Positions 47,002 to 63,838 of a stretch of 64,000 bases of DNA are shown piece by piece. The position numbers were made by a program, and so were the translations under genes. Source of the stretch: Macrostomum hystrix (lineage: Eukaryota > Animalia > Platyhelminthes); contig CATNEN010000011.1 of the NCBI GenBank assembly GCA_950097015.1, forward strand, positions 1,922,001 through 1,986,000, read 5' to 3'. The notes beneath the pieces were generated by a model that saw only the letters and a program-made list of their open reading frames with translations, made no database searches and had not been told where the DNA came from. The stretch's first letter is position 1. Each line of letters starts with the position of its first letter.

Positions 47002-50000
47002 CAGCGTTCCAGCGCATATTACGATCTAAATCTGTTGGATCGGCAGGCGGCCACAGTGGCCCGCAGTCAGAGTCTCGGCTACACCCATCTGGCCTTTGCT
47101 GTTGTGCACTCTAGCTTGAAAGCCCCGCCGCCGCCGCCGCCGCCTCTGCCGACTGACACCTCGGGTGAGTTAAATCTTTGAGTAGCTTTTGTTAGAGGTA
47201 CATAAGGTAACCAGCACATAGATTTAATTGCGTCTGAAAACAAAAAAACATTATCGAATGTTGATTTCAACGACCAAGCAGCGTTCAATCTGTATCCGTT
47301 TTCTCTCTAAACCTTTATGAATTTTTACTCAGACTGTTCCTATGTTCATTAATTTCTTCCCTATTTCTAAGCTTCTAAACCTTTTGTGTTTTCTCCTCCT
47401 TCTCTACTCATACCCACCACTCTTCTCCATTCGTCCCCCCAATTCCTTCTTCCCCCCCACCTCCCGATTCTCCCCCACTTCCTTCTACCCCTCCACTTCC
47501 TTCTACCCCTCCACTTCCTTCTTCCCCTCCACTTCCTTCTTCCCCTCCACTTCTTTCTTCCCCTGCATTCCCTGTGTTTCTCAGATCTCCTTAATCCCTA
47601 TTTTCCATGTCGCATCCAGGCCCAGTTTATTCCCGGTCGGGCAGTCGCCTATCCAGACTGACCCTATCGCTGCCAGCCGAAGTCCAAGAGTCCGAGCTCA
47701 AGTCCTACTTCAGGCAGTACGCCAAAGAGCTCGACGCCTACGACCTGCTGGCAGTGATGCCTCGAAGCCAATCGGCCATGCATGCCTGCGCTGAGAGTTT
47801 ACCAATAGACCTGCTAGCCTGCGACCTGGCCGCTTCAAAGCCTGACCCATTCTGGTCCGACATTCGGGAAGTCAGGACTGCTGTGCGGAGAGGAATCAAG
47901 ATCGAGGTGAGACTGCTCGTTTATAAAAAGATTACAAAATCCCCACAATGCCGCTGTAAGTAGTCCTACTACTAGTAAATTACCGGAACTTACTGCTGAT
48001 CATTTATTTATTACTTACCATTACTGCCACTATTAGTAGTGTGTGTGGGATGTGTACAACTGTTTAATGACATGGAATTGCCGATGGGGCAATTATTTTA
48101 CAAGCTCGTTGCATAAGTACACTAGCGATGCAATTACTTATCGCAGCCCCACGCTTTATAATACTTCTGATATAAAAATAATGGTAATCATTTCAGGAGG
48201 GCTGCGGGCAATGGCACATCCCTAGACCCGCAGCCAGCGAGGAGGCAATTCTGCCCGTTTCGCTGACTCCTGGGCACACAGATACATGTGTGTACATCTG
48301 CCCTGACTTTCTCATTGTCAGGAAGTGTACACTCTCACTGTGCCTTGGGGGTTGGCCATCGGCCTCGGGATTCGCCAAATGGCCTCGCCGCGGAATCGAG
48401 CTCATGGACCTTGGTGCGAGAGGCGACCGCATTAGACCGGTCTGCCACTCACCCCCTCACTCACGCTTGACTTTGAGATTAGAGAATTCCTTATTTTACA
48501 CTCCCTATCCATAATCTCACCCAATCGCTTTTTCTCCATCTTCATCTCTTCATTTATAATTATTTTCCTTCATTCGTTCATCCCTTCCCGTCTAGAATTT
48601 ATTCCAGAATCTCTCCCTTCATCCCGCCCTATCCGGAATCTCTCCATTCATCCCGCCCTATCCGGAATCTCTCCCTTCATCCCGCCCTATCCGGAATCTC
48701 TCCGTTCATCTAGCCATATCCAGAATCTCTCCCTTCATCTCGCTCTATCCAGAATCTCCCCCTTCATCACGCCATATCCAGAATCTCCCCCTTCAACCCG
48801 CCCTATCCAGAATCTCTCCGTTAATCTAGCCCTATCCAGAATCTCTCCCTTCATCCCGCCCTATCCAGAATCTCTCCCTTCATCTCGCTCTATCCAGAAT
48901 CTCCCCCTTCATCACGCCATATCCAGAATCTCCCCCTTCAACCCGCCCTATCCAGAATCTCTCCGTTAATCTAGCCCTATCCAGAATCTCTCCCTTCATC
49001 CCGCCCTATCCGGAATCTCTCCGTTCATCACGCCCTATCCAGAATCTCTCCGTTCATCTAGCCCTATCCAGAATCTCTCCGTTCATCTAGCCCTATCAAG
49101 AATCTCCCCCTTCATCTCGCCATATCCAGAATCTCTCCCTTCATCTCGCCATATTCAGAATCTCTCCCTTCATCACGCCCTATCCAGAATCTCTCCCTTC
49201 ATCACGCCATATCCAGAATCTCCCTCTTCATCACGCCCTATCCAGAATCTCCCTCTTCATCACGCCCTATCCAGAATCTCCCTCTTCATCACGCCATATC
49301 CAGAATCTCTCCTTTCATCTCGCTCTATCCAGAATCTCCCCCTTCATCACGCCCTATTCAGAATCTCTCCCTTCATCTCGCTCTATCCAGAATCTCCCCC
49401 TTCATCACGCCCTATTCAGAATCTCTCCCTTCATCTCGCTCTATCCAGAATCTCCCCCTTCATCACGCCCTATCCAGAATCTCCCTCTTCATCACGCCAT
49501 ATCCAGAATCTCTCCCTTCATCTCGCTCTATCCAGAATCTCCCCCTTCATCACGCCATATCCAGAATCTCCCCCTTCAACCCGCCCTATCCAGAATCTCT
49601 CCGTTCATCTAGCCCTATCCAGAATCTCTCCCTTCATTTCTCTCTATTAAGAATCTCTCCCTTCATCTCGCCCTATTCAGAATCTCTCCCTTCATTTCTC
49701 TCTATTAAGAATCCCTCCCTTCATCTCGCCCTTTTCAGAATCTCTCCTAACCCTAACCCTAACCCTAACCCAGGTGTCCCTGCAGCCGCTGCTCCAGTCG
49801 CAACAGAGTCGAGTCCTGGCCTCCAGCCTCCTATTTGAGCTGCTGACCTCAGCCAGGCTGTCTCCAGCCGGCCTAGTGCTCAGCTCCGGCGCTAACAGCC
49901 AATGGGATCTGCGCGACCCGTTCGGCTATAGCGCCTTAGCCTCTGTGCTGGGCGTGCCGCCAGATAAGACTCGCGACTGCCTGTCGACCAACTGCCAATC

Positions 50001-50247
50001 GGCTGTGGAGAAAGCTCTGGTTAGACGAAAGACTGCTCACGGCGCCCTGGCTATTGCTCACATTGCTAAACTGCCCGGCGTGTGCAGCGTTCAGGTCCTC
50101 GGCGTCGATTCTGCGGCTACGTCGGCGGATTCCGCAAGGAAGCGGGCGGCCCAGGACGGCGAGGATCGCGACCGCCTGATTGACCTGCTGCTGCCGGCTA
50201 AGAGAAGAAAAAAGAAGAAAGGCGGTGCAGTTGTGCGGCTGCAGTAG
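47002..50247 (+). CDS. RPP30: RNase P/MRP subunit p30 (exons 47002-47164, 47620-47906, 49774-50247); no in-frame ATG in the first visible exon
   Basis: YYDLN..LGYTHLAF, RLSRLTL, YDLLAVMPRS..CAESLPIDLL, AVRRGIKIE|VSL, LVLSSGA..DLRDP, STNC..RKTAHG, C-terminal KRRKKKK; splice phases consistent. Confidence 0.88.
47440..47565. repeat. 18-bp pyrimidine-rich repeat (CCCCTCCACTTCCTTCTW) in an RPP30 intron
   Basis: About 6 tandem units. Confidence 0.8.
48222..48456 (-). mobile_element. tRNA-derived SINE (family A), full-length-looking copy
   Basis: Minus strand GGGGGTGAGTGGCAGACCGG (A box) ... GAGCTCGATTCC (B box); body shared with the 23.3-kb and 27.5-kb copies. Confidence 0.8.
48600..49745. repeat. 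29-bp minisatellite (CCAGAATCTCTCCCTTCATCACGCCCTAT) in an RPP30 intron
   Basis: Tandem units visible. Confidence 0.95.
49746..49770. repeat. Interstitial telomeric repeat (CCCTAA)~4 abutting the RPP30 last-exon acceptor
   Basis: CCTAACCCTAACCCTAACCCTAACC|CAG|GTGTCC. Confidence 0.85.
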
Positions 50248-50479
50248 AAACTGGGATTTCTCTAGGCTTTGCTTGTTTGAGAGAATATCCCCAGGCACTT
50301 ATTTTGTTGCTAGACCATTTTAATTTAGATCCTCACTCAAGTTTTCAAATCCCCTAATTATTTCCCATACGTCAGTTTAGCTTCCAGATTACAAATTTAG
50401 ATTTTTTTAGATTCTAAAAACTAGCTTTCAGATCCTAAATTAAGCTCCCTAATCCTTAATAATGCTCCCTGATCCTAAG

Positions 50480-51655
50480 TTTGACTCCCAGATCCCAAAT
50501 TTATCTCCCAGATCCCAAATTTTTCTCCCAGATCCCAAATTTATCACACGTACAGATCACAAATTTATCTCCCAGATCCCAAATTTATCTCCCAGATCCC
50601 AAATTTATCACACGTACAGATCACAAATTTTTCTCCCAGATCCCAAATTTATCACACGTACAGATCACAAATTTATCTCCCAGATCCCAAATTTATCTCC
50701 CAGATCCCAAATTTATCACACGTACAGATCACAAATTTATCTCCCAGATCCCAAATTTATCACCCAGATCCCTAATTTATCACCCAGATCCCTAATTTAT
50801 CACCCAGATCCCAAATTTAGCTCCCAGATCCCAAATTTAGCTCCCAGATTACAAATTTATCACCCAGATCCCAAATTTATCTCTCAAATCCCAAATTTAG
50901 CTCCCAGATCCCAAATTTATCTCCCAGATCCCAAATTTAGCTCCCAGATTACAAATTTATCACCCAGATCCCAAATTTATCTCTCAAATCCCAAATTTAG
51001 CTCCCAGATCCCAAATTTATCTCCCAGATCCCAAATTTAGCTCCCAGATCCCAAATTTATCTCTCAAATCCCAAATTTAGCTCCCAGATCCCAAATTTAT
51101 CTCCCAGATCCCAAATTTAGCTCCCAGATTACAAATTTATCACCCAGATCCCAAATTTATCTCTCAAATCCCAAATTTAGCTCCCAGATCCCAAATTTAT
51201 CTCCCAGATCCCAAATTTATCTCCCAGATCCCAAATTTATCTCCCAGATCTCAAATTTATCACTCAGATGCCGAATTTATCTCCCAGATCCCAAATTTAT
51301 CTCCCAGATCCTAAATTTATCACCCAGATCCCAAATTTATCTCCCAGATCCTAAATTTATCACCCAGATCCCAAATTTATCACCCAGATCCCAAATTTAT
51401 CTCCCAGATCCCAAATTTATCTCCCAGATCCCAAATTTATCACCCAGATGCCGAATTTATCTCCCAGATCCCAAATTTATCTCCCAGATCCCAAATTTAT
51501 CTCCCAGATCCCAAATTTATCTCCCAGATCCCAAATTTATCTCCCAGATCTCAAATTTATCTCCCAGATCCCAAATTTATCTCCCAGATCCTAAATTTAT
51601 CACCCAGATCCCAAATTTATCTCCCAGATCCCAAATTTATCTCCCAGATGCCGAA
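50480..51655. repeat. 20-bp minisatellite (CCCAGATCCCAAATTTATCT)
   Basis: Tandem units visible. Confidence 0.95.
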
Positions 51656-52149
51656 TTCAGCTCCCTCATGCCTATTTTGTTCTTGAATCCGCAGTGCAGT
51701 TGCAAGATACTTGCACTAAGTATCAGTTTATGGGAATGCAAATGTTGCATGCCAATTCATATTAGTCACCAATCTTTAAGGCCGTACGTGAAAATTTTGT
51801 TAATTGATACTCATATGTTAGTTTATTCTCTTGCTTTATTTTTTCCGATTTACATACCGAGTTATCTGCAAGCTAAATATTGCTGCTTTTCAAATGTTAA
51901 TTAACGCAACAGAAAGCATTTCGTATGACTGCTTTTGTGCATTTCTGATTCATCAGCAAAAAATATTTTATGTGTTGTTTTATTTTCATAATTCACTGAA
52001 AATACTAGAAAAAGTTTTTGTACAAAATACAAATACGAGCTCGTACAATGTTAGATATCTTATAGTGTGTATAGTACAGAAAATATGTAATATATTGAGG
52101 GTCTGAGAATTCGATTTAAATTATGGAAGTAAACTGGGGATTATTAGAA

Positions 52150-55100
52150 ACTCAACTGTAGATGTAGGAATTCAACTGTTGATGTAGGAATTCAACTGTA
52201 GATGTAGGAATTCAACTGTAGATGTAGGAATTCAACTGTAGATGTAGGAATTCAACTGTAGATGTAGGAATTCAACTGTAGATGTAGGAATTCAACTGTA
52301 GATGTAGGAATTCAACTGTAGATGTAGGAATTCAACTGTAGATGTAGGAATTCAACTGTAGATGTAGGAATTCAACTGTAGATCTGGGAACTCAACTGTA
52401 GATGTAGGAATTCAACTGTAGATGTAGGAATTCAACTGTAGATCTGGGAATTCAACTGTAGATGTAGGAATTCAACTGTAGATCTGGGAATTCAACTGTA
52501 GATCTGGGAATTCAACTGTAGATCTGGGAATTCAACTGTAGATGTAGGAATTCAACTGTAGATCTGGGAACTCAACTGTAGATGTAGGAATTCAACTGTA
52601 GATGTAGGAATTCAACTGTAGATCTGGGAATTCAACTGTAGATGTAGGAATTCAACTGTTGATGTAGGAACTCAACTGTAGATGTAGGAATTCAACTGTA
52701 GATGTAGGAATTCAACTGTAGATGTAGGAATTCAACTGTAGATCTGGGAACTCAACTGTAGATGTAGGAATTCAACTGTAGATGTAGGAATTCAACTGTT
52801 GATGTAGGAACTCAACTGTAGATGTAGGAATTCAACTGTAGATGTAGGAATTCAACTGTAGATGTAGGAACTCAACTGTAGATGTAGGAACTCAACTGTA
52901 GATGTAGGAATTCAACTGTAGATGTAGGAACTCAACTGTAGATGTAGGAATTCAACTGTAGATGTAGGAATTCAACTGTTGATGTAGGAATTCAACTGTT
53001 GATGTAGGAACTCAACTGTTGATGTAGGAATTTAACTGTTGATGTAGGAATTCAACTGTAGATGTAGGAGTTCAACTGTAGATGTAGGAATTCAACTGTA
53101 GATGTAGGAATTCAACTGTTGATGTAGGAATTCAACTGTAGATGTAGGAATTCAACTGTAGATGTAGGAATTCAACTGTTGATGTAGGAATTCAACTGTA
53201 GATGTAGGAATTCAACTGTAGATGTAGGAATTCAACTGCAGATCTGGGAATTCAACTGTAGATGTAGGAATTCAACTGCAGATCTGGGAACTCAACTGTA
53301 GATGTAGGAATTCAACTGTAGATGTAGGAATTCAACTGTTGATGTAGGAACTCAACTGTAGATGTAGGAATTCAACTGTAGATGTAGGAATTCAACTGTA
53401 GATGTAGGAACTCAACTGTAGATGTAGGAATTCAACTGTTTATGTAGGAATTCAACTGTAGATGTAGGAATTCAACTGTAGATGTAGGAATTCAACTGTA
53501 GATGTAGGAATTCAACTGTAGATGTAGGAACTCAACTGTAGATGTAGGAATTCAACTGTAGATGTAGGAATTCAACTGTAGATGTAGGAATTCAACTGTA
53601 GATGTAGGAATTCAACTGTAGATGTAGGAATTCAACTGTAGATGTAGGAACTCAACTGTAGATGTAGGAATTCAACTGTTTATGTAGGAATTCAACTGTA
53701 GATGTAGGAATTCAACTGTAGATGTAGGAATTCAACTGTTGATGTAGGAATTCAACTGTAGATGTAGGAATTCAACTGTAGATGTAGGAATTCAACTGTA
53801 GATGTAGGAATTCAACTGTAGATGTAGGAACTCAACTGTAGATGTAGGAACTCAACTGTAGATGTAGGAATTCAACTGTAGATGTAGGAACTCAACTGTA
53901 GATGTAGGAATTCAACTGTAGATGTAGGAATTCAACTGTTGATGTAGGAATTCAACTGTTGATGTAGGAACTCAACTGTAGATGTAGAAACTCAACTGTT
54001 GATGTAGGAACTCAACTGTTGATGTAGGAATTTAACTGTTGATGTAGGAATTCAACTGTAGATGTAGGAGTTCAACTGTAGATGTAGGAATTCAACTGTA
54101 GATGTAGGAATTCAACTGTTGATGTAGGAATTCAACTGTAGATGTAGGAATTCAACTGTAGATGTAGGAATTCAACTGTTGATGTAGGAATTCAACTGTA
54201 GATGTAGGAATTCAACTGTAGATGTAGGAATTCAACTGCAGATCTGGGAACTCAACTGTAGATGTAGGAATTCAACTGTAGATGTAGGAATTCAACTGTT
54301 GATGTAGGAATTCAACTGTAGATGTAGGAATTCAACTGTAGATGTAGGAATTCAACTGTTGATGTAGGAATTCAACTGTAGATGTAGGAATTCAACTGTA
54401 GATGTAGGAACTCAACTGTAGATGTAGAAACTCAACTGTTGATGTAGGAACTCAACTGTTAATGTAGGAATTTAACTGTTGATGTAGGAATTCAACTGTA
54501 GATGTAGGAATTCAACTGTAGATGTAGGAATTCAACTGTTGATGTAGGAACTCAACTGTAGATGTAGAAACTCAACTGTTGATGTAGGAACTCAACTGTT
54601 AATGTAGGAATTTAACTGTTGATGTAGGAATTCAACTGTTAATGTAGGAATTTAACTGTTGATGTAGGAATTCAACTGTAGATGTAGGAATTCAACTGTT
54701 GATGTAGGAATTTAACTGTTGATGTAGGAATTCAACTGTAGATGTAGGAACTCAACTGTAGATGTAGAAACTCAACTGTAGATGTAGGAATTCAACTGTT
54801 AATGTAGGAATTTAACTGTTGATGTAGGAATTCAACTGTAGATGTAGGAATTCAACTGTTGATGTAGGAATTCAACTGTAGATGTAGGAATTCAACTGTT
54901 GATGTAGGAATTCAACTGTTGATGTAGGAACTCAACTGTAGATGTAGAAACTCAACTGTTGATGTAGGAACTCAACTGTTAATGTAGGAATTTAACTGTT
55001 GATGTAGGAATTCAACTGTAGATGTAGGAGTTCAACTGTAGATCTGGGAACTCAACTGTAGATGTAGGAACTCAACTGTAGATGTAGGAATTCAACTGTA

Positions 55101-57536
55101 GATGTAGGAATTCAACTGTAGATGTAGGAATTCAACTGTAGATGTAGGAATTCAACTGTAGATGTAGGAATTCAACTGTAGATGTAGGAATTCAACTGTA
55201 GATGTAGGAATTCAACTGTAGATGTAGGAATTCAACTGTAGATGTAGGAACTCAACTGTAGATGTAGGAACTCAACTGTAGATGTAGGAATTCAACTGTT
55301 TATGTAGGAATTCAACTGTAGATGTAGGAATTCAACTGTAGATGTAGGAATTCAACTGTTGATGTAGGAACTCAACTGTAGATGTAGAAACTCAACTGTT
55401 GATGTAGGAACTCAACTGTTAATGTAGGAATTTAACTGTTGATGTAGGAATTCAACTGTAGATGTAGGAATTCAACTGTAGATGTAGGAATTCAACTGTT
55501 GATGTAGGAATTCAACTGTTGATGTAGGAATTCAACTGTTGGTGTAGGAATTCAACTGTTGATGTAGGAATTCAACTGTTGGTGTAGGAATTCAACTGTT
55601 GATGTAGGAATTCAACTGTTGATGTAGGAATTCAACTGTTGGTGTAGGAATTCAACTGTTGGTGTAGGAATTCAACTGTTGATGTAGGAATTCAACTGTA
55701 GATGTAGGAATTCAACTGTAGATGTAGGAACTCAACTGTAGATGTAGGAATTCAACTGTTTATGTAGGAATTCAACTGTAGATGTAGGAATTCAACTGTA
55801 GATGTAGGAATTCAACTGTAGATGTAGGAATTCAACTGTAGATGTAGGAACTCAACTGTAGATGTAGGAACTCAACTGTAGATGTAGGAACTCAACTGTA
55901 GATGTAGGAATTCAACTGTTTATGTAGGAATTCAACTGTTGATGTAGGAATTCAACTGTAGATGTAGGAATTCAACTGTAGATGTAGGAATTCAACTGTA
56001 GATGTAGGAATTCAACTGTTGATGTAGGAACTCAACTGTAGATGTAGAAACTCAACTGTTGATGTAGGAACTCAACTGTTGATGTAGGAATTTAACTGTT
56101 GATGTAGGAATTCAACTGTAGATGTAGGAGTTCAACTGTAGATGTAGGAATTCAACTGTAGATGTAGGAATTCAACTGTTGATGTAGGAATTCAACTGTA
56201 GATGTAGGAATTCAACTGTAGATGTAGGAATTCAACTGTTGATGTAGGAATTCAACTGTAGATGTAGGAATTCAACTGTAGATGTAGGAATTCAACTGCA
56301 GATCTGGGAACTCAACTGTAGATGTAGGAATTCAACTGTAGATGTAGGAATTCAACTGTTGATGTAGGAACTCAACTGTAGATGTAGGAATTCAACTGTA
56401 GATGTAGGAATTCAACTGTAGATGTAGGAACTCAACTGTAGATGTAGGAATTCAACTGTTTATGTAGGAATTCAACTGTAGATGTAGGAATTCAACTGTA
56501 GATGTAGGAATTCAACTGTAGATGTAGGAATTCAACTGTAGATGTAGGAACTCAACTGTAGATGTAGGAATTCAACTGTAGATGTAGGAATTCAACTGTA
56601 GATGTAGGAATTCAACTGTAGATGTAGGAATTCAACTGTAGATGTAGGAATTCAACTGTAGATGTAGGAACTCAACTGTAGATGTAGGAATTCAACTGTT
56701 TATGTAGGAATTCAACTGTAGATGTAGGAATTCAACTGTAGATGTAGGAATTCAACTGTTGATGTAGGAATTCAACTGTAGATGTAGGAATTCAACTGTA
56801 GATGTAGGAATTCAACTGTAGATGTAGGAATTCAACTGTAGATGTAGGAACTCAACTGTAGATGTAGGAACTCAACTGTAGATGTAGGAATTCAACTGTA
56901 GATGTAGGAACTCAACTGTAGATGTAGGAATTCAACTGTAGATGTAGGAATTCAACTGTTGATGTAGGAATTCAACTGTTGATGTAGGAACTCAACTGTA
57001 GATGTAGAAACTCAACTGTTGATGTAGGAACTCAACTGTTGATGTAGGAATTTAACTGTTGATGTAGGAATTCAACTGTAGATGTAGGAGTTCAACTGTA
57101 GATGTAGGAATTCAACTGTAGATGTAGGAATTCAACTGTTGATGTAGGAATTCAACTGTAGATGTAGGAATTCAACTGTAGATGTAGGAATTCAACTGTT
57201 GATGTAGGAATTCAACTGTAGATGTAGGAATTCAACTGTAGATGTAGGAATTCAACTGCAGATCTGGGAACTCAACTGTAGATGTAGGAATTCAACTGTA
57301 GATGTAGGAATTCAACTGTTGATGTAGGAATTCAACTGTAGATGTAGGAATTCAACTGTAGATGTAGGAATTCAACTGTTGATGTAGGAATTCAACTGTA
57401 GATGTAGGAATTCAACTGTAGATGTAGGAACTCAACTGTAGATGTAGAAACTCAACTGTTGATGTAGGAACTCAACTGTTAATGTAGGAATTTAACTGTT
57501 GATGTAGGAATTCAACTGTAGATGTAGGAATTCAAC
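52150..57536. repeat. 20-bp satellite (GATGTAGGAATTCAACTGTA), about 5.4 kb, with ~1-kb higher-order structure
   Basis: About 270 monomers with no indels (phase constant throughout); rare variants recur at about 1 kb. Confidence 0.98.
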
Positions 57537-57916
57537 TGCGACTTTTGGTTACGCGACTTGTTTGTACTTGCTCTGATTGTGTCTCTCTTTTCTTTATCGC
57601 TGCACCCCCCTCCTTCCCCCTGCCCCTGCTACTCTCCACGATTGTACCCCAACCCCCCTTTCGTCGCTTTCCTTTGTCTGCCTATGTACATCTGAGGCGG
57701 GGTTTAACCCTATCCTTACTATCGATCGCTTCTCTCTAGCCGCTAGTGTTAAGTTCAAATATAATGTCTGGCCCTCTGGGCCTTTGTGAGTCATCCCCCA
57801 TTGCGCTCTCTGTCTCGTTTGAGGTTTGGCCGTATGAACGGGCTCTTGCTGCGAAGATTCAATTAATTGCATGACTTCAACTCGCTTCGCTTCTTAATTC
57901 ACTCGAAGTAAAGACA
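57537..57916 (+). mobile_element. Putative 5' LTR of the BEL/Pao element (start inferred)
   Basis: TG at the satellite junction, CA at 57915-57916 immediately before the PBS, TATA-like AATATAAT at 57758; the 3' LTR is not in the window, so the start is unconfirmed. Confidence 0.65.
57829..57873 (+). other. Flatworm spliced-leader-like 45-mer embedded in the LTR
   Basis: GCCGTATGAACGGGCTCTTGCTGCGAAGATTCAATTAATTGCATG aligns without gaps, 38/45, to the M. lignano SL as recalled from memory (GCCGTAAAGACGGTCTCTTACTGCGAAGACTCAATTTATTGCATG); ends in the flatworm-typical ATG. Confidence 0.8.
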
Positions 57917-57928
57917 TGGCGCCCGAAC
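57917..57928 (+). promoter_or_regulatory. Primer-binding site, tRNA-Lys type
   Basis: TGGCGCCCGAAC directly after the LTR-terminal CA; same first 12 nt as the known tRNA-Lys PBS TGGCGCCCGAACAGGGAC. Confidence 0.8.
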
Positions 57929-58504
57929 GAAAATAAGCCCTCTAGAAAAGTAAGTCGTCAGTCGTATTCTCATCGATTCGGTCGAAGTTGCCGGCGGTCT
58001 CGCTCACCTCTTTGTATGCTGCCGGTCTCGCTCGCCTCTTCGTCTGCTGCCGGCCTCGCTCGCTTCTTCACCTGCCTGCCGGCTTCGTTCGCTCTCCCGT
58101 CTACTGGCTCACGCCTGCCGGCCTCGCTCGCTCCCTCGCATACCGGCTGGTGTCTGTCTCCCTATTTCGTGACTGTCTCATCAATTAACTGAACTGTCGA
58201 GATAAGTAATAATAGATTTTACTGATCGCAATCCCATATTTATCATCTGTACTCGCTGGCGTTATTTTTTACGCGGTTTCTCGTTATCTTGTAACTCAAA
58301 CGTGTGTTTTTGCTCTTATTGTTATTTTGTTCTTCACGCATCTCAAAGCTAAAATTCTTCTGTTGCTTTCTCTGTCCTTTGAGTCTTTCTCTGCCTTTTT
58401 TTCTTCACCACTTCAAGGTCCTGCTGTATCCGCTTGCGGCATCCGTTGCGCTCTTCTCCTTGGGGTTCCGATCTTAGCCAGACGCACTTTCGCCAAGGTG
58501 GTCA

Positions 58505-61500
58505 ATGGATGAAGCCATCAGAAAGAGAGCGGCCATTCGGTCCGTTGTGACAAAGACCATAAATCGAGCAGAGAAGTGGCTGTCAGCTGGAAGTGGACGT
58601 GATGACAAAATAAACGCTGAAGCTGAAGCATGCATTGATACTCTGAAGCAGAAACTGGGATTGATGGAGGAATTGGACCTGGACATTCAGAGTCAGATGG
58701 AAGAGGAAAAGCTGAGTCGTGAACAAGAAGAAGCTGATGAGTATGCATTCAGGTGTCGGAAGTACGTCAGATTGTTAGAGAAATCATTATCAAATGCGAC
58801 TAAGTCTGTAACATCTGGACCTCAGGTCAAACTGCCGAAACGTCATATCCCTACATTTGACGGCACGGTGACGTCATGGCAAACGTATTGGGATCAGTTC
58901 TCCTCGTCAATCGATTCGAATAATCAGCTATCGGACATCGACAAGTTTAATTACCTCTTGGATTCGCTCTCTGAATCAGCCAAGTCCTGCATTCGTGGAC
59001 TGAGTGTTACTTCAGCTAATTACAAGGTAGCTATCGATCTTCTACATCAACGCTTTGGTAAATCAGATCTGGTAATTCGAAGTCTAATGAACCAACTGTC
59101 AGATATTCACCTATCAGAGGTGTCATTAGCAGGCTTACGTTCGTTTCACGATGACATAGCTGCTGCCGTTCGAAGCTTGGAAGTTCAGGGAGTAATGTCG
59201 TCGGCTTATGAGGCATTGCTGTTGCCTAATCTGCTTCGTAAGTGTCCAAATGAATTTCGTCTCGACCTAATGAAGTGCGCGAGCCTGTCGAAGAAAGAAA
59301 TCAACAACATGGCTGTTCTGCTGGAGTTTCTACAGACAGAAATTCAAGTTCGAGAGAACGCAGCAGTGGGCGGTAAGAAATCGAGCAACTCAGAAGCCAG
59401 TCGACATTGCCTTCAACCTAAGTCTTCGCTTGCAACGTTAACCGTGCAGTCACGAAATGATCGACAAGCTGTCATGAAGATCTTTTGTACGTACTGTGGC
59501 TCGGACCATACATCTGAGAAGTGTTCGAAGTTGGTCTCGGTGGATGCTCGAATCGAATTTCTGAAGAAGGAGCAGCGTTGCTTTCGGTGCCTCAGGTCAG
59601 GTCATTCATCAAGGACGTGTCATGATTCCCGGCGATGCAGAAACTGTTCAGGCGCTCACCATGTCAGCATCTGCAATTGTGGCCTGTCAGATGGACAGGG
59701 GTCGGGCTTCAAAATGAAAGCAAAGAGTATCGATTCGACAGTCAAGAGTGGCGCGGTCCAGAACAAGACCTTTGCCAATGCGAAGAAGGACGTCATTCGG
59801 CAGGTGCAGACTGGGAGTACGAACGCGGCACAGAGTGAACCTGAATCTGTGGTTTCAACGGAAGGAAACTTTGCTCTCTCCATGTTCATCAATCGTAACC
59901 CCGCTGTCGCTCTTCCAGTTGCAAAGGCAATTCTGATTGCTCCTGACGGACGTCGAGAACTGCTGGTGAGGGTTCTACTGGATACCGCAAGCAATCGGTC
60001 GTATATTCGAGAAGACGTATGCGACTTGCTCCAGTTTGAACGGTTTGCTGAGGAAAGTTTGAAAGTCTCTGCCTTTTCTGGAATCGCTACGACGGTGAAC
60101 TCTTCAAGAGTGAAATTCCACATTCGCAAGGTTGACTCCATGGAGATCATCAGACTGGAAGCTAATGTCGTAAAGCAGATCTGTCAGCCTCAGACTTCAG
60201 TTATCGTCAATTCGTTTCAACACCTTCGTGATGTAGACCTAGCGGATCCATATGACCCACGTGACATCAGTACTCCAATCTCGATCCTCGTAGGCTCAGA
60301 TCAATACTTCCAAATTGTAGGCGACAACGTGATTCGTGGCACCTCAGGACCAGTCGCCATTTCCTCTAAGCTAGGATTCCTTCTCTGTGGTCCTCTAGCG
60401 ATCGATGGGTCAGCCAAGGATGAGCCTATCGTTTCCGAAGATTCAGCTGATTGTAGTACGGCTCAGACCTTGTGCTGCGCTACTCCTGATGATGCCTTTG
60501 TCACAACTGACTCGTCGAAGTGTAACCTCTCTTCATTCTGGCGACTTGAAGCACTAGGGATCAGTGAGCAAAAGGATGATTCCACGGAGGGTTCGTTTAT
60601 CTGTAATCCAAGGCTCGAGAACGGTCGGTACAGCGTCAGTCTACCATGGAAATACCCGGAAGGCTCAGTGCCGTTGGATGATCACTTCGACATGGCGTAC
60701 AGTAGACTGTCGTCCACAACTCGTGCTCTGAGGAAGGATCCAGAGACTCTGACAAAGTATAGCGGAATCATTTCGGAACAGGAAGCTTCGGGCATAATCG
60801 AGAAGGTGCCCGAGAAAGATCTTGGCAAGAACACTTGTCATTATATGCCTCATCACCACGTCATAAAGTCAGACAGTGAGCACACAAAGATACGTATTGT
60901 GTTTGATGGATCTGCCAGACTTCGAACAGGCGACTTCTCAATCAATGATCTTCTTCAAGCTGGTCCGACTGATGTACCTCTGATCCCAGAAATTCTGATG
61001 AGATTTCGCAAACATCCGATCGCCATCATAGGAGACATAGAAAAAGCCTTCTTGCAGATTGCCATCGATAGTGAGGACAGAGACTATCTGAGATTTCTGT
61101 GGACTAACCCGAGTGAGTCGGACAAGGTTTTTCACTATCGCTTCTGTAGATTGCCGTTCGGTCTTACGTGCTCTCCTGGTGTATTGAGAGCTACGGTCCT
61201 TCAACACATTGATAGCCAGAAGAATAATTTTCCACTCGCCGCTGAGATTATTCGCAAAGACTTGTACGTCGACAATTTAGTGACAAGCTGTAAATCTCTA
61301 AGTGACGCATTCAATCTCTACAAAGATGCAAAAAATATCTTCAACCTGGCTGGCATGAATATGCGACAGTGGAAATCCAACTCAGATTCGTTCAACAGCT
61401 CGCTACCCGATCAGGATGTTGGTCATACAAAAAAAGTGCTTGGACTCCACTGGGACTCGGTCAGGGACACATTCGTCATGCAGTTTTCTGAACTAGTTAC

Positions 61501-63838
61501 CCACGTCAACGGATCCTCTTCAACCAAGAGGTCGATGCTAGGAGTACTTGCGTCTGTGTACGATCCGTTAGGAATCTTGTCACCCTCTTTGACTGTTGTC
61601 AAGGTGATGCTACAGAAACTGTGTGTTCGCAAGTCGGGTTGGGACGACGAACTTCCGCCAGATATCGCCGAGAGTTGGAACCGTTGGTTACAGTCGTTGT
61701 CGAGCTCACGCTTCGAAGTTCCTCGCTACCTTTTCGCCGATCTCGATTCGGAGCCAGTTCGAATGGAATTACATGGATTCTGTGATGCAAGTGAATCTGC
61801 TTACGCTGCCTGTGTCTACATTCAGGCCCGGTCGGAAACAAACAACGTTTCAACGCATTTAATTCAGGCCAAAACGCGCGTGGCACCGCTATCAAATCTT
61901 AGCATCGCTAGACTAGAACTGCTGGGAGCCCTAATCTTAGCTCGTCTAATACGCACGGTGTCTTTGCAATTTCCCAGCATGACGCGTTATCTCTGGACAG
62001 ACAGCAAGACAACTCTGCAGTGGATCACCAACACCGACAAGCTTCGCCAAGTTTTCGTTCAAAACCGCGTTAAGGAGATCCGGACTCTCACGTCAACGTC
62101 CGAGTGGCGACATGTTCCCGGGGAACTGAACCCCGCCGACCTGCCATCTCGAGGCTGTCTTCCAGGGCAGCTACAGAAAAACAAGGTGTGGTTTAGTGGT
62201 CCCGAATTTCTTCGATCAGGCATCTACCCAGCTTCGTCTGAAGATAAGCATTCGAGCGCAGTCGCGGAAGATCATAACTCTGCAGAAGCACTATCAACAG
62301 TCGCTGAACAGCCCATGGAATCTAAGAACGTCGATCGTATCTCTTTAATCATTGACATCGGCAAGTTTTCGAACTATTCGAGAGAGTTACGCGTCCTAGC
62401 ATGGGTACAAAGATTTGTCCGCAACCTACGGAGTGCTCGAGCTCAATCGTTGGTCAATAAATCAAGGACGGTGACCGCCGAAGAGTTGACTGATGCAGAA
62501 GTCCTATTGGTAAGGTCAATTCAAAGGGAATCGTTTTCAAAGGAAATCGATCACATTCGGCGTAGCTCTGCTGCAACACATCTGAACAGGAACTTGAATC
62601 TGTGGTTAGATGATAAGGGACTTTTGCGTTCACAAGGTCGTATCTCCGCACTGTCCTTCGAAGTTAATAATCCTATCTTAGTACCTCGCCACAGTCACTT
62701 GGAGCAGCTCATTATTCGACAAGCTCATCAGTCCGTTGCTCACGGGGGAGTTGCCTCAACGCTTAGTAAAGTTCGTGAAAAATATTGGATTCTGAAGGGA
62801 CGTCAACGAACTAAGCAAGAACTATCGAAGTGTGTGGTGTGTAGGAAGGTACAAGGACGCTCATACGTTGTACCTCAGATCTCTCAGCTACCTGAGTTTC
62901 GCCTTTCCGACATCCGACCCTTTCAATCAGTCGGCGTGGACTACTGTGGTCCGATATTCTATCGGACGGGGGAGGATGGTTGTGACTCTCGGAAGGCGTA
63001 CATTCTACTTCTCACATGCTCATCGACTCGCGCAGTGCATCTGGAACTGCTTCCTGACATGACCGCATCGCAGTTCTTGAATGGATTACGTCGTTTTGTC
63101 AGTCGTCGCGGAATACCTTCCATCATCAGTGACAATGCCAAGACGTTCAAGGCTGCCGCGAATATTCTTGGAGCTAGCACCAGCTATAAAGTTCAATCAT
63201 TCTGTGCCAACAAGAAAATCTCTTGGGAGTTCATTCCGGAGAAGGCCCCGTGGTGGGGCGGATTTTGGGAAAGACTCGTTGGAATCGTTAAGGATGGATT
63301 GAAAAAGAGCATTGGCAAAGCTCTGCTAACATTCGATGAGCTATCAACTTCGGTTATCGAAATGGAATCTGTGGTGAACAGTCGACCACTTATGTATGTG
63401 TCGGCGGATGAGATCAACGACGTATTGACGCCTGCGCACTTTCTCTTCGGAACTCGGTTGACTCAGGAGCCAACTCTCTCGTCGAACCGTATCGCCAACG
63501 TCCTGCCATTGCCAGCTCGACTCAAACATCTCAGAAGAGCGTTGAATATTTTTTGGGATGTATGGAAAACGTCATATGTCACCGCCCTGCGTGAGAAAGC
63601 GCTCAAGTCGCATGGAGGAGGACCAGTTGCAAAACCCGGAGACGTCGTTTTGGTTCAGGGAGAACCGCATCAGCCAAGACTGCAATGGAAGATGGGTGTG
63701 GTAGAGTCTGTCCGTGAGGGTCGAGATGGTGCCGTTCGTTCCGCAGTTGTACGTCTGGCGAAGGAAAGGGGCTCTCGGGGGGCTGAGCGCATCAGACGGC
63801 CTGTCCAAGCTCTCATTCCTCTTGAATTGTGCATCTAA
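58505..63838 (+). CDS. BEL/Pao Gag-Pol polyprotein, intact (1777 aa)
   Basis: Gag PTFDG..W..YWDQF, three Cys/His knuckles (CTYCGSDH, CFRCLRSGH, CRNCSGAHHVSIC), protease LLDTAS, RT DIEKAFLQI..LPFGL..YVDN, RNase H LHGFCDAS/WTDS, integrase H..HGG/CVVC, VDYCGP, SDNA, WERLV; order PR-RT-RH-IN. Confidence 0.97.
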   Translation: MDEAIRKRAAIRSVVTKTINRAEKWLSAGSGRDDKINAEAEACIDTLKQKLGLMEELDLDIQSQMEEEKLSREQEEADEYAFRCRKYVRLLEKSLSNATKSVTSGPQVKLPKRHIPTFDGTVTSWQTYWDQFSSSIDSNNQLSDIDKFNYLLDSLSESAKSCIRGLSVTSANYKVAIDLLHQRFGKSDLVIRSLMNQLSDIHLSEVSLAGLRSFHDDIAAAVRSLEVQGVMSSAYEALLLPNLLRKCPNEFRLDLMKCASLSKKEINNMAVLLEFLQTEIQVRENAAVGGKKSSNSEASRHCLQPKSSLATLTVQSRNDRQAVMKIFCTYCGSDHTSEKCSKLVSVDARIEFLKKEQRCFRCLRSGHSSRTCHDSRRCRNCSGAHHVSICNCGLSDGQGSGFKMKAKSIDSTVKSGAVQNKTFANAKKDVIRQVQTGSTNAAQSEPESVVSTEGNFALSMFINRNPAVALPVAKAILIAPDGRRELLVRVLLDTASNRSYIREDVCDLLQFERFAEESLKVSAFSGIATTVNSSRVKFHIRKVDSMEIIRLEANVVKQICQPQTSVIVNSFQHLRDVDLADPYDPRDISTPISILVGSDQYFQIVGDNVIRGTSGPVAISSKLGFLLCGPLAIDGSAKDEPIVSEDSADCSTAQTLCCATPDDAFVTTDSSKCNLSSFWRLEALGISEQKDDSTEGSFICNPRLENGRYSVSLPWKYPEGSVPLDDHFDMAYSRLSSTTRALRKDPETLTKYSGIISEQEASGIIEKVPEKDLGKNTCHYMPHHHVIKSDSEHTKIRIVFDGSARLRTGDFSINDLLQAGPTDVPLIPEILMRFRKHPIAIIGDIEKAFLQIAIDSEDRDYLRFLWTNPSESDKVFHYRFCRLPFGLTCSPGVLRATVLQHIDSQKNNFPLAAEIIRKDLYVDNLVTSCKSLSDAFNLYKDAKNIFNLAGMNMRQWKSNSDSFNSSLPDQDVGHTKKVLGLHWDSVRDTFVMQFSELVTHVNGSSSTKRSMLGVLASVYDPLGILSPSLTVVKVMLQKLCVRKSGWDDELPPDIAESWNRWLQSLSSSRFEVPRYLFADLDSEPVRMELHGFCDASESAYAACVYIQARSETNNVSTHLIQAKTRVAPLSNLSIARLELLGALILARLIRTVSLQFPSMTRYLWTDSKTTLQWITNTDKLRQVFVQNRVKEIRTLTSTSEWRHVPGELNPADLPSRGCLPGQLQKNKVWFSGPEFLRSGIYPASSEDKHSSAVAEDHNSAEALSTVAEQPMESKNVDRISLIIDIGKFSNYSRELRVLAWVQRFVRNLRSARAQSLVNKSRTVTAEELTDAEVLLVRSIQRESFSKEIDHIRRSSAATHLNRNLNLWLDDKGLLRSQGRISALSFEVNNPILVPRHSHLEQLIIRQAHQSVAHGGVASTLSKVREKYWILKGRQRTKQELSKCVVCRKVQGRSYVVPQISQLPEFRLSDIRPFQSVGVDYCGPIFYRTGEDGCDSRKAYILLLTCSSTRAVHLELLPDMTASQFLNGLRRFVSRRGIPSIISDNAKTFKAAANILGASTSYKVQSFCANKKISWEFIPEKAPWWGGFWERLVGIVKDGLKKSIGKALLTFDELSTSVIEMESVVNSRPLMYVSADEINDVLTPAHFLFGTRLTQEPTLSSNRIANVLPLPARLKHLRRALNIFWDVWKTSYVTALREKALKSHGGGPVAKPGDVVLVQGEPHQPRLQWKMGVVESVREGRDGAVRSAVVRLAKERGSRGAERIRRPVQALIPLELCI

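Follow-up and report, generated by a model that had tools for sequence, protein, structure and literature searches.

A probable relic of the host's mature spliced leader in the long terminal repeats of a BEL/Pao retrotransposon of the flatworm Macrostomum hystrix

Genome-encoded copies of the spliced leader (SL) in retrotransposons were mentioned in a passing remark on Schistosoma mansoni in 2018 (PMC5832876), and a survey of 24 parasitic flatworm species discarded 597 SL-like loci residing in LTR and LINE elements in 2025 (PMC12582326). Both reports give the same explanation as the one that we favor below, and the statement of our first-pass annotation that no such case was known from flatworms does therefore not hold. 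In C. elegans, transcripts of the LTR retrotransposon Cer1 are trans-spliced to SL1, which is present on the spliced 2.4-kb subgenomic mRNA only and not on the 8-kb genomic RNA (PMC3315495). This trans-splicing is all that the study contains in this respect; for a capture of SL fragments by nematode Cer elements, which the first-pass annotation had mentioned, we found no record in the literature. An SL is not mentioned in the study on the LTR retrotransposons of M. lignano either. We know of no SL that was described in the LTRs of the named BEL/Pao reference elements. Within the genus Macrostomum, the SL of M. cliftonense comprises 45 nt and that of M. hystrix is identical apart from lacking the first 2 nt (Table S3, PMC10468722), while the 35-nt SL of M. 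lignano corresponds to the 3' part of the 45-mer (PMC8629364).

We analysed a 64-kb stretch of DNA from M. hystrix (contig 11, positions 1,922,001-1,986,000), hereafter referred to as the window, which harbors an LTR retrotransposon within a satellite array. The main features of the element and its setting are as follows.

52005..57537, no strand assigned: 20-bp satellite array of 5.5 kb (unit close to AGATGTAGGAATTCAACTGT, at least 269 copies), inside which the element is inserted
57538..57916, forward strand: 5' LTR, 379 nt as present, ending in ...AAAGACA and without its first 4 nt (TGTA)
57917..57929, forward strand: primer-binding site (PBS) TGGCGCCCGAACG, directly after the LTR
58505..63838, forward strand: open gag-pol frame of 1777 aa with DUF1759, RVT_1, Peptidase_A17, Integrase_H2C2 and DUF5641

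The domains of the gag-pol frame (with Peptidase_A17 at 4e-47 and DUF1759 at 7e-31), the direct LTRs, the PBS and a polypurine tract (TTTGGGGGAG) ahead of the 3' LTR identify the element as a BEL/Pao LTR retrotransposon. The 3' LTR, which is located just past the window (window-equivalent positions 64383-64761), is identical to the 5' LTR over 379 nt, and the satellite array picks up again in phase directly beyond it. The element had been called intact, which is true of the open reading frame and of the identical LTRs, but the 5' LTR is missing its TGTA (the canonical LTR of the family begins TGTAGCGAC) and no target-site duplication is visible at the window copy. Canonical and sister copies are flanked by 5-bp target-site duplications (CCACC, AGCGT). 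A second full-length copy (L001/L006, C39:14877605-14884823) resides at another site, is flanked by the CCACC duplication and has LTRs that are 100% identical to those in the window; this identity suggests that the family may have moved very recently. The PBS is common to other SL-bearing BEL/Pao and gypsy families and presumably belongs to a lysine tRNA, an assignment that we take from the PBS of HIV-1; a 3'-end pattern search for the gene of the primer tRNA returned PBS copies only. An exact-protein look-up of the gag-pol products of the window element and of its M. lignano relative gave no match. Upstream of the satellite, at 47342-51040 of the window, three open frames of 150-192 aa are located.

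The SL of the host was searched for in the M. hystrix assembly (220,453,370 bases, 42 contigs). The SL RNA genes of this genome carry exactly the 45-mer followed by GTAAG, and 19 loci, in which the SL continues into the intron 30-mer starting with GTAAGACACCG, represent true SL RNA genes, none of which is located inside an LTR. All but one of them, which lies on a fourth contig, are arranged as tandem units on three contigs (18/19; C15, C17 and C42), with a spacing of about 11.6 kb, and each of these units comprises a U1 snRNA gene (Rfam, 152 bits) at a distance of a few hundred bases, as exemplified by positions 1838-2000 of locus L040 on C15. When the whole genome was searched with the 31-nt core of the SL, allowing up to three mismatches, 208 matches were obtained (0 for the reversed control), which include the 19 SL RNA genes. 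Apart from these, the genome thus contains about 190 SL-like segments, i.e. around nine in ten of all matches.

One of these segments lies in the LTR of the window element, where we distinguish the following features.

57760..57767, forward strand: TATA-like box (TATAATGT), 69 nt upstream of SL nucleotide 1
57829..57873, forward strand: SL copy, a DNA-encoded version of the host's mature spliced leader (45 nt) with an identity of 38/45
57871..57897, forward strand: short upstream reading frame of 8 codons followed by TAA, for which the SL copy provides the start codon with its terminal ATG (read from the sequence)
57874..57916, forward strand: 43-nt tail, presumed U5, from the SL copy to the LTR end; in the genome found only beside SL copies

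The first-pass annotation had pointed to a 45-mer at 57829-57873 that resembles the SL which it gave for M. lignano. Indeed, the 45-mer is present letter for letter on the forward strand, as a single copy within the 64-kb window, and the SL sequence given there is correct, since it agrees with the published Macrostomum SL as well as with the SL RNA genes of this genome. We also obtained the claimed ungapped identity of 38/45 to the host SL, with differences at SL positions 7, 8, 9, 14, 20, 30 and 37; over the whole window and both strands, about 7e-9 matches of at least 38/45 are expected by chance. As had been described, 43 nt separate the segment from the end of the LTR (57916), and the PBS TGGCGCCCGAACG comes directly next.

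The segment had furthermore been interpreted as a mature SL and not as an SL RNA gene, which is strongly supported. The copy begins with the first nucleotide of the SL, runs up to the splice donor and is in sense orientation, its terminal ATG is followed by AC and not by GT, it comes without the SL RNA intron and without an Sm site, what lies downstream shows no relation to GTAAGACACCG, and in older members of the LTR family the match to the SL is 45/45. An Rfam search of the LTR yielded no family match. An SL RNA gene would be expected to have a GT donor after the leader, an Sm-binding site, stem-loops and an snRNA-type tandem unit, and the window segment does not qualify as one.

Only part of the hairpin that had been proposed for the segment could be upheld. 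The CCGT/ACGG pairing is kept and three changes fall in its loop, but the isolated 45-mer folds no better than shuffled sequences (z = -1.25 for the host SL and 0.04 for the window variant), and the two sequences are predicted to fold differently. We rejected a conservation of the secondary structure as unsupported, the folding being neither significant nor conserved. In one old copy, the double change C3T and G12A preserves the first stem; this is a single case, the copy is decayed, and C3T as well as G12A are transitions at CpG sites.

Within the LTR family of the window element, the copies form a graded series with regard to their differences from the host SL.

L020 and L021, the most diverged LTRs: 0/45 differences
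L017: 1/45 differences
L015 and L018: 2/45 differences
L014, L027 and L028: 3/45 differences
Young copies including the window (LTRs 99-100% identical): 7/45 differences

All copies of this series have the same upstream bases, extend from SL nucleotide 1 to the last base of the SL exon and continue with LTR sequence that is unlike the SL RNA intron. Since the SL is present at 45/45, 44/45 and 43/45 in older family members, in the same position, we conclude from the comparison of the copies that the window lineage is a diverged descendant of an exact SL copy. Compared with its closest older relative, L014, the window LTR differs at 7/334 positions outside the SL and at 4/45 positions inside. 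These four changes are clustered (positions 7, 8, 9 and 14) and equal the variant of a non-autonomous family and its relatives, where intermediates exist. When this "ATGA loop plus G14" variant was searched for as a 19-mer with at most one mismatch, it was found 66 times in the genome and in none of the SL RNA genes; it is common to the window family and to the non-autonomous 1.8-kb family with the same PBS. Because the block of four changes matches the variant of a second family, the window SL is a mosaic, whose nt 1-19 agree with that variant and whose nt 15-45 agree with the older copies of its own family. The block that is shared with another LTR family points to recombination as its likely source.

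Leaving the recombination block aside, the SL differs from the older copies at 3/41 positions and the rest of the LTR at 29/332, and among the older copies and in the gypsy clade the SL diverges at about the rate of the flanking LTR. Decay at the neutral rate, which had been named beforehand as an outcome speaking against the original proposal, is thus roughly what we observed. Across the LTR copies compared, no sign was seen that identity to the host SL is being maintained: divergence is highest in the youngest copies, and it is the lineage with the greatest success whose SL is the least host-like.

SL copies in sense orientation occur in the LTRs of BEL/Pao as well as Ty3/gypsy elements, so that at least two superfamilies are concerned, and are present in three families with coding frames. 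A second BEL/Pao element (L068), whose pol is 50% identical to that of the window element, carries the SL in an LTR of 266 nt. Two elements of 1.8 kb (L031 and L033, on C15 and C1, respectively) have 351-nt LTRs and an internal tandem repeat with no recognisable gag or pol; they share the PBS of the window element, their SL is located 13 nt before the LTR end, and their family is probably non-autonomous and borrows the machinery of BEL/Pao elements. In the Ty3/gypsy element L066, which has the same type of PBS, the SL lies 333 nt into a 690-nt LTR, and further LTRs homologous to this gypsy LTR also bear the SL. From the presence in two superfamilies we conclude that there were at least two captures, one per superfamily. 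Between BEL/Pao families whose U3 can no longer be aligned, the SL is still about 85% identical or better; instead of plain drift, this could reflect constraint, renewal or captures that took place separately.

A relative of these LTRs in a pre-capture state, with an AG acceptor at the junction, was not found. The sole candidate is L086 (C27:163000-171500, reverse strand, about 900-1080), an old solo LTR of about 180 nt related to the window family, in which the 45-nt SL is replaced by 13 nt resembling its first 6 and last 4 bases; judged by its sequence, it may have arisen by deletion or may represent the state before capture. A BEL/Pao element of nearly full length on a JGI metagenome contig of 6435 nt (L088), which is 45% identical over the first 600 residues searched, has the same PBS as the window element, a similar polypurine tract and no SL-like segment in its LTR. 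Three further loci (L054, L039 and L062, on C25, C7 and C2, respectively) contain exact or near-exact SL cores, which are followed by unrelated sequence that looks single-copy; these loci may represent retro-copied trans-spliced host messages.

Regarding its position in the LTR, the SL had been assigned to the U3/R boundary, where strong-stop DNA would have fixed it. This assignment is plausible in view of two short sister BEL/Pao LTRs, in which the homologous TATA box starts 33 nt before SL nucleotide 1, a spacing that predicts a transcript start within a few bases of the SL, and in view of swapped R-U5 blocks that start with the SL. In the window family, however, there are about 36 extra bases between TATA box and SL compared with the sister families, and because the box is 69 nt upstream, transcription is predicted to start at about 57790 and not at 57829, so that the SL would be inside R. 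In the gypsy LTR, a TTTAAAAG motif is located 13 nt upstream of the SL. A swapped block is evident from the comparison of L031 with L037, which share 288/294 upstream (U3) positions, while 7/45 SL positions, a 4-nt indel at the junction and the U5 tail set them apart (p = 4e-4). Such a mosaic would result if the first jump had linked the U3 of one RNA with the R-U5 of a different one, and it is a second indication that the SL belongs to the strong-stop portion of the LTR. Contigs from four public runs, whose type is unrecorded and which are probably RNA, run unbroken through polypurine tract, LTR and PBS, so that no start and no poly(A) site can be read from them. One contig of 31 letters covers 57849-57879 at high depth with two differences and may derive from host SL joined to other messages.

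Based on the identity, boundaries and orientation of the segment, its position in the LTR, its spread over families, its stepwise divergence and the exchange of blocks, we consider it likely that the segment is a relic of the host's mature SL, which has become ordinary LTR sequence. Its exact SL exon boundaries and sense orientation, without intron or Sm site, argue that a mature trans-spliced RNA was reverse-transcribed, and from the same comparisons we infer that trans-splicing took place, that strong-stop DNA was the route and where transcription starts. In this scenario, the SL would have been trans-spliced to the genomic RNA of an ancestral BEL/Pao element upstream of the PBS, and minus-strand strong-stop DNA would have copied the trans-spliced RNA up to its capped 5' end. 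An irregular first jump could then have set the SL between U3 and the remaining R-U5, after which both LTRs would encode it. From then on, the SL would be transcribed from the LTR promoter, splicing would give no renewal and the segment would drift with the LTR. Because several families share the SL within the strong-stop region, it may in addition have become a crossover point, at which co-packaged elements exchange R-U5 pieces.

Other readings have to be weighed against such a relic. We attach a vanishingly small probability to the insertion of an SL RNA gene or pseudogene as DNA and to a chance or convergent resemblance. The resemblance as such would be accounted for, whereas not one LTR copy has a donor GT, an intron or an Sm site after the ATG, the LTR has no Rfam match, and all 19 loci with the intron 30-mer, the 18 in tandem as well as the single one, lie elsewhere; chance is at odds with 45/45 in the older copies and with the expectation of about 7e-9 for 38/45. 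Insertion, chance and convergence are refuted by the boundaries together with the graded series of copies. Selection on a DNA-encoded leader is a different matter, since the first-pass annotation had suggested that a host-like leader could improve translation or export of the element's RNA or its escape from silencing. Every LTR copy that still has the region retains the SL segment, even deletion derivatives with a length of 200 and 238 nt. The segment persists in two superfamilies and many diverged families, and BEL/Pao families with 50% identity in pol keep it while most of their U3 is unalignable. Moreover, the terminal ATG was lost repeatedly (ATA, AAG, AGA) in several families, which suggests selection on the segment as part of a 5' leader. 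Together, the SL shared next to an unalignable U3 and the repeated loss of the ATG leave room for more than drift. However, the youngest and most numerous copies are the farthest from the host SL (7/45), the divergence of the SL roughly keeps pace with that of the flanking LTR in the BEL/Pao family and in the gypsy clade, and the folds are neither conserved nor significant. In addition, a leader transcribed from DNA would receive an ordinary cap and not the trimethylguanosine cap, which SL RNA gains via its Sm site. The sequence evidence therefore leans against the proposed functions in translation, export or silencing evasion, and we regard selection for a mimic of the leader as quite unlikely.

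The segment could also persist without any selection on the RNA, if it acts as a shared repeat (R). The SL would be present at the RNA 5' end of many families and of all trans-spliced host mRNAs, and strong-stop DNA could switch templates within it, spread R-U5 modules and occasionally reset the segment to the host sequence. In favor of such a role, two independent block replacements are limited to the SL or to SL plus U5 in LTRs with 98% identity elsewhere, the "ATGA loop plus G14" variant with its 66 matches is common to the window family and the non-autonomous family, and host-exact and variant SLs occur side by side in closely related LTRs. The exchange is, however, deduced from sequence mosaics only, the young window lineage displays no reset to the host sequence, and template switching in the SL is compatible with its origin as a relic and does not necessarily replace this explanation. 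To this role, and to the persistence of the SL that would follow from it, we assign a fairly low probability. Whether as a universal R patch, which would link unrelated LTR families and trans-spliced host RNAs in a network of R-U5 exchange, or as a host-like 5' leader that improves the fate of the element's RNA, it appears rather doubtful to us that the leader is a working part of the LTR. If true, either possibility would explain the independent fixation in two LTR superfamilies and the long retention of the segment.

As a relic, the SL segment provides a clean and datable record of host RNA processing in the terminal repeat of a retroelement, with the ancestral exact copy and its stepwise descendants present in one genome. 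Since about nine in ten of the SL-like matches are in transposons, SL-based annotation of gene boundaries and the mapping of SL reads in M. hystrix can be misled by LTR transcripts. If the leader marks the start of R in several families, these LTRs would represent a natural system for strand-transfer recombination between unrelated LTR elements, and it could be tested in a flatworm amenable to transgenesis whether a leader without the special cap affects the fate of the RNA.

Compared with described systems, the window element corresponds to Pao, BEL and Sinbad of Schistosoma in its set of domains, its single gag-pol frame, its short LTRs, its tRNA-type PBS and, as far as the sister copies are concerned, its 5-bp target-site duplications, whereas the LTR of its BEL/Pao relative from the metagenome differs by the lack of an SL-like segment. 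Cer1 demonstrates that transcripts of LTR retrotransposons can serve as substrates of SL trans-splicing, as would have been the case for the ancestor of the window element, but the Cer1 study is silent on an SL encoded in the LTR (PMC3315495). The relics of DinoSL in dinoflagellate retrogenes (PMC6050394, PMC5585692) are similar in that a DNA-encoded remnant of the SL marks an RNA that was trans-spliced and reverse-transcribed; in M. hystrix, it is the retroelement itself that carries the leader, which both LTRs have incorporated. Counterparts of the same kind are found in the reports on parasitic flatworms (PMC5832876, PMC12582326), in which the leader likewise occurs without the rest of the SL RNA and is tied to LTR and LINE elements. 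Those reports consist of one-paragraph remarks on discarded loci, concern partial leaders whose place in the element is not stated and consider an assembly artefact as possible, whereas in M. hystrix, a free-living flatworm, the leader is full-length, has exact boundaries and a fixed place in the LTR, and is found in graded copies and in two superfamilies. The SL-bearing LTRs of M. hystrix are thus of a kind that was already noted, and they are resolved here in much greater detail.
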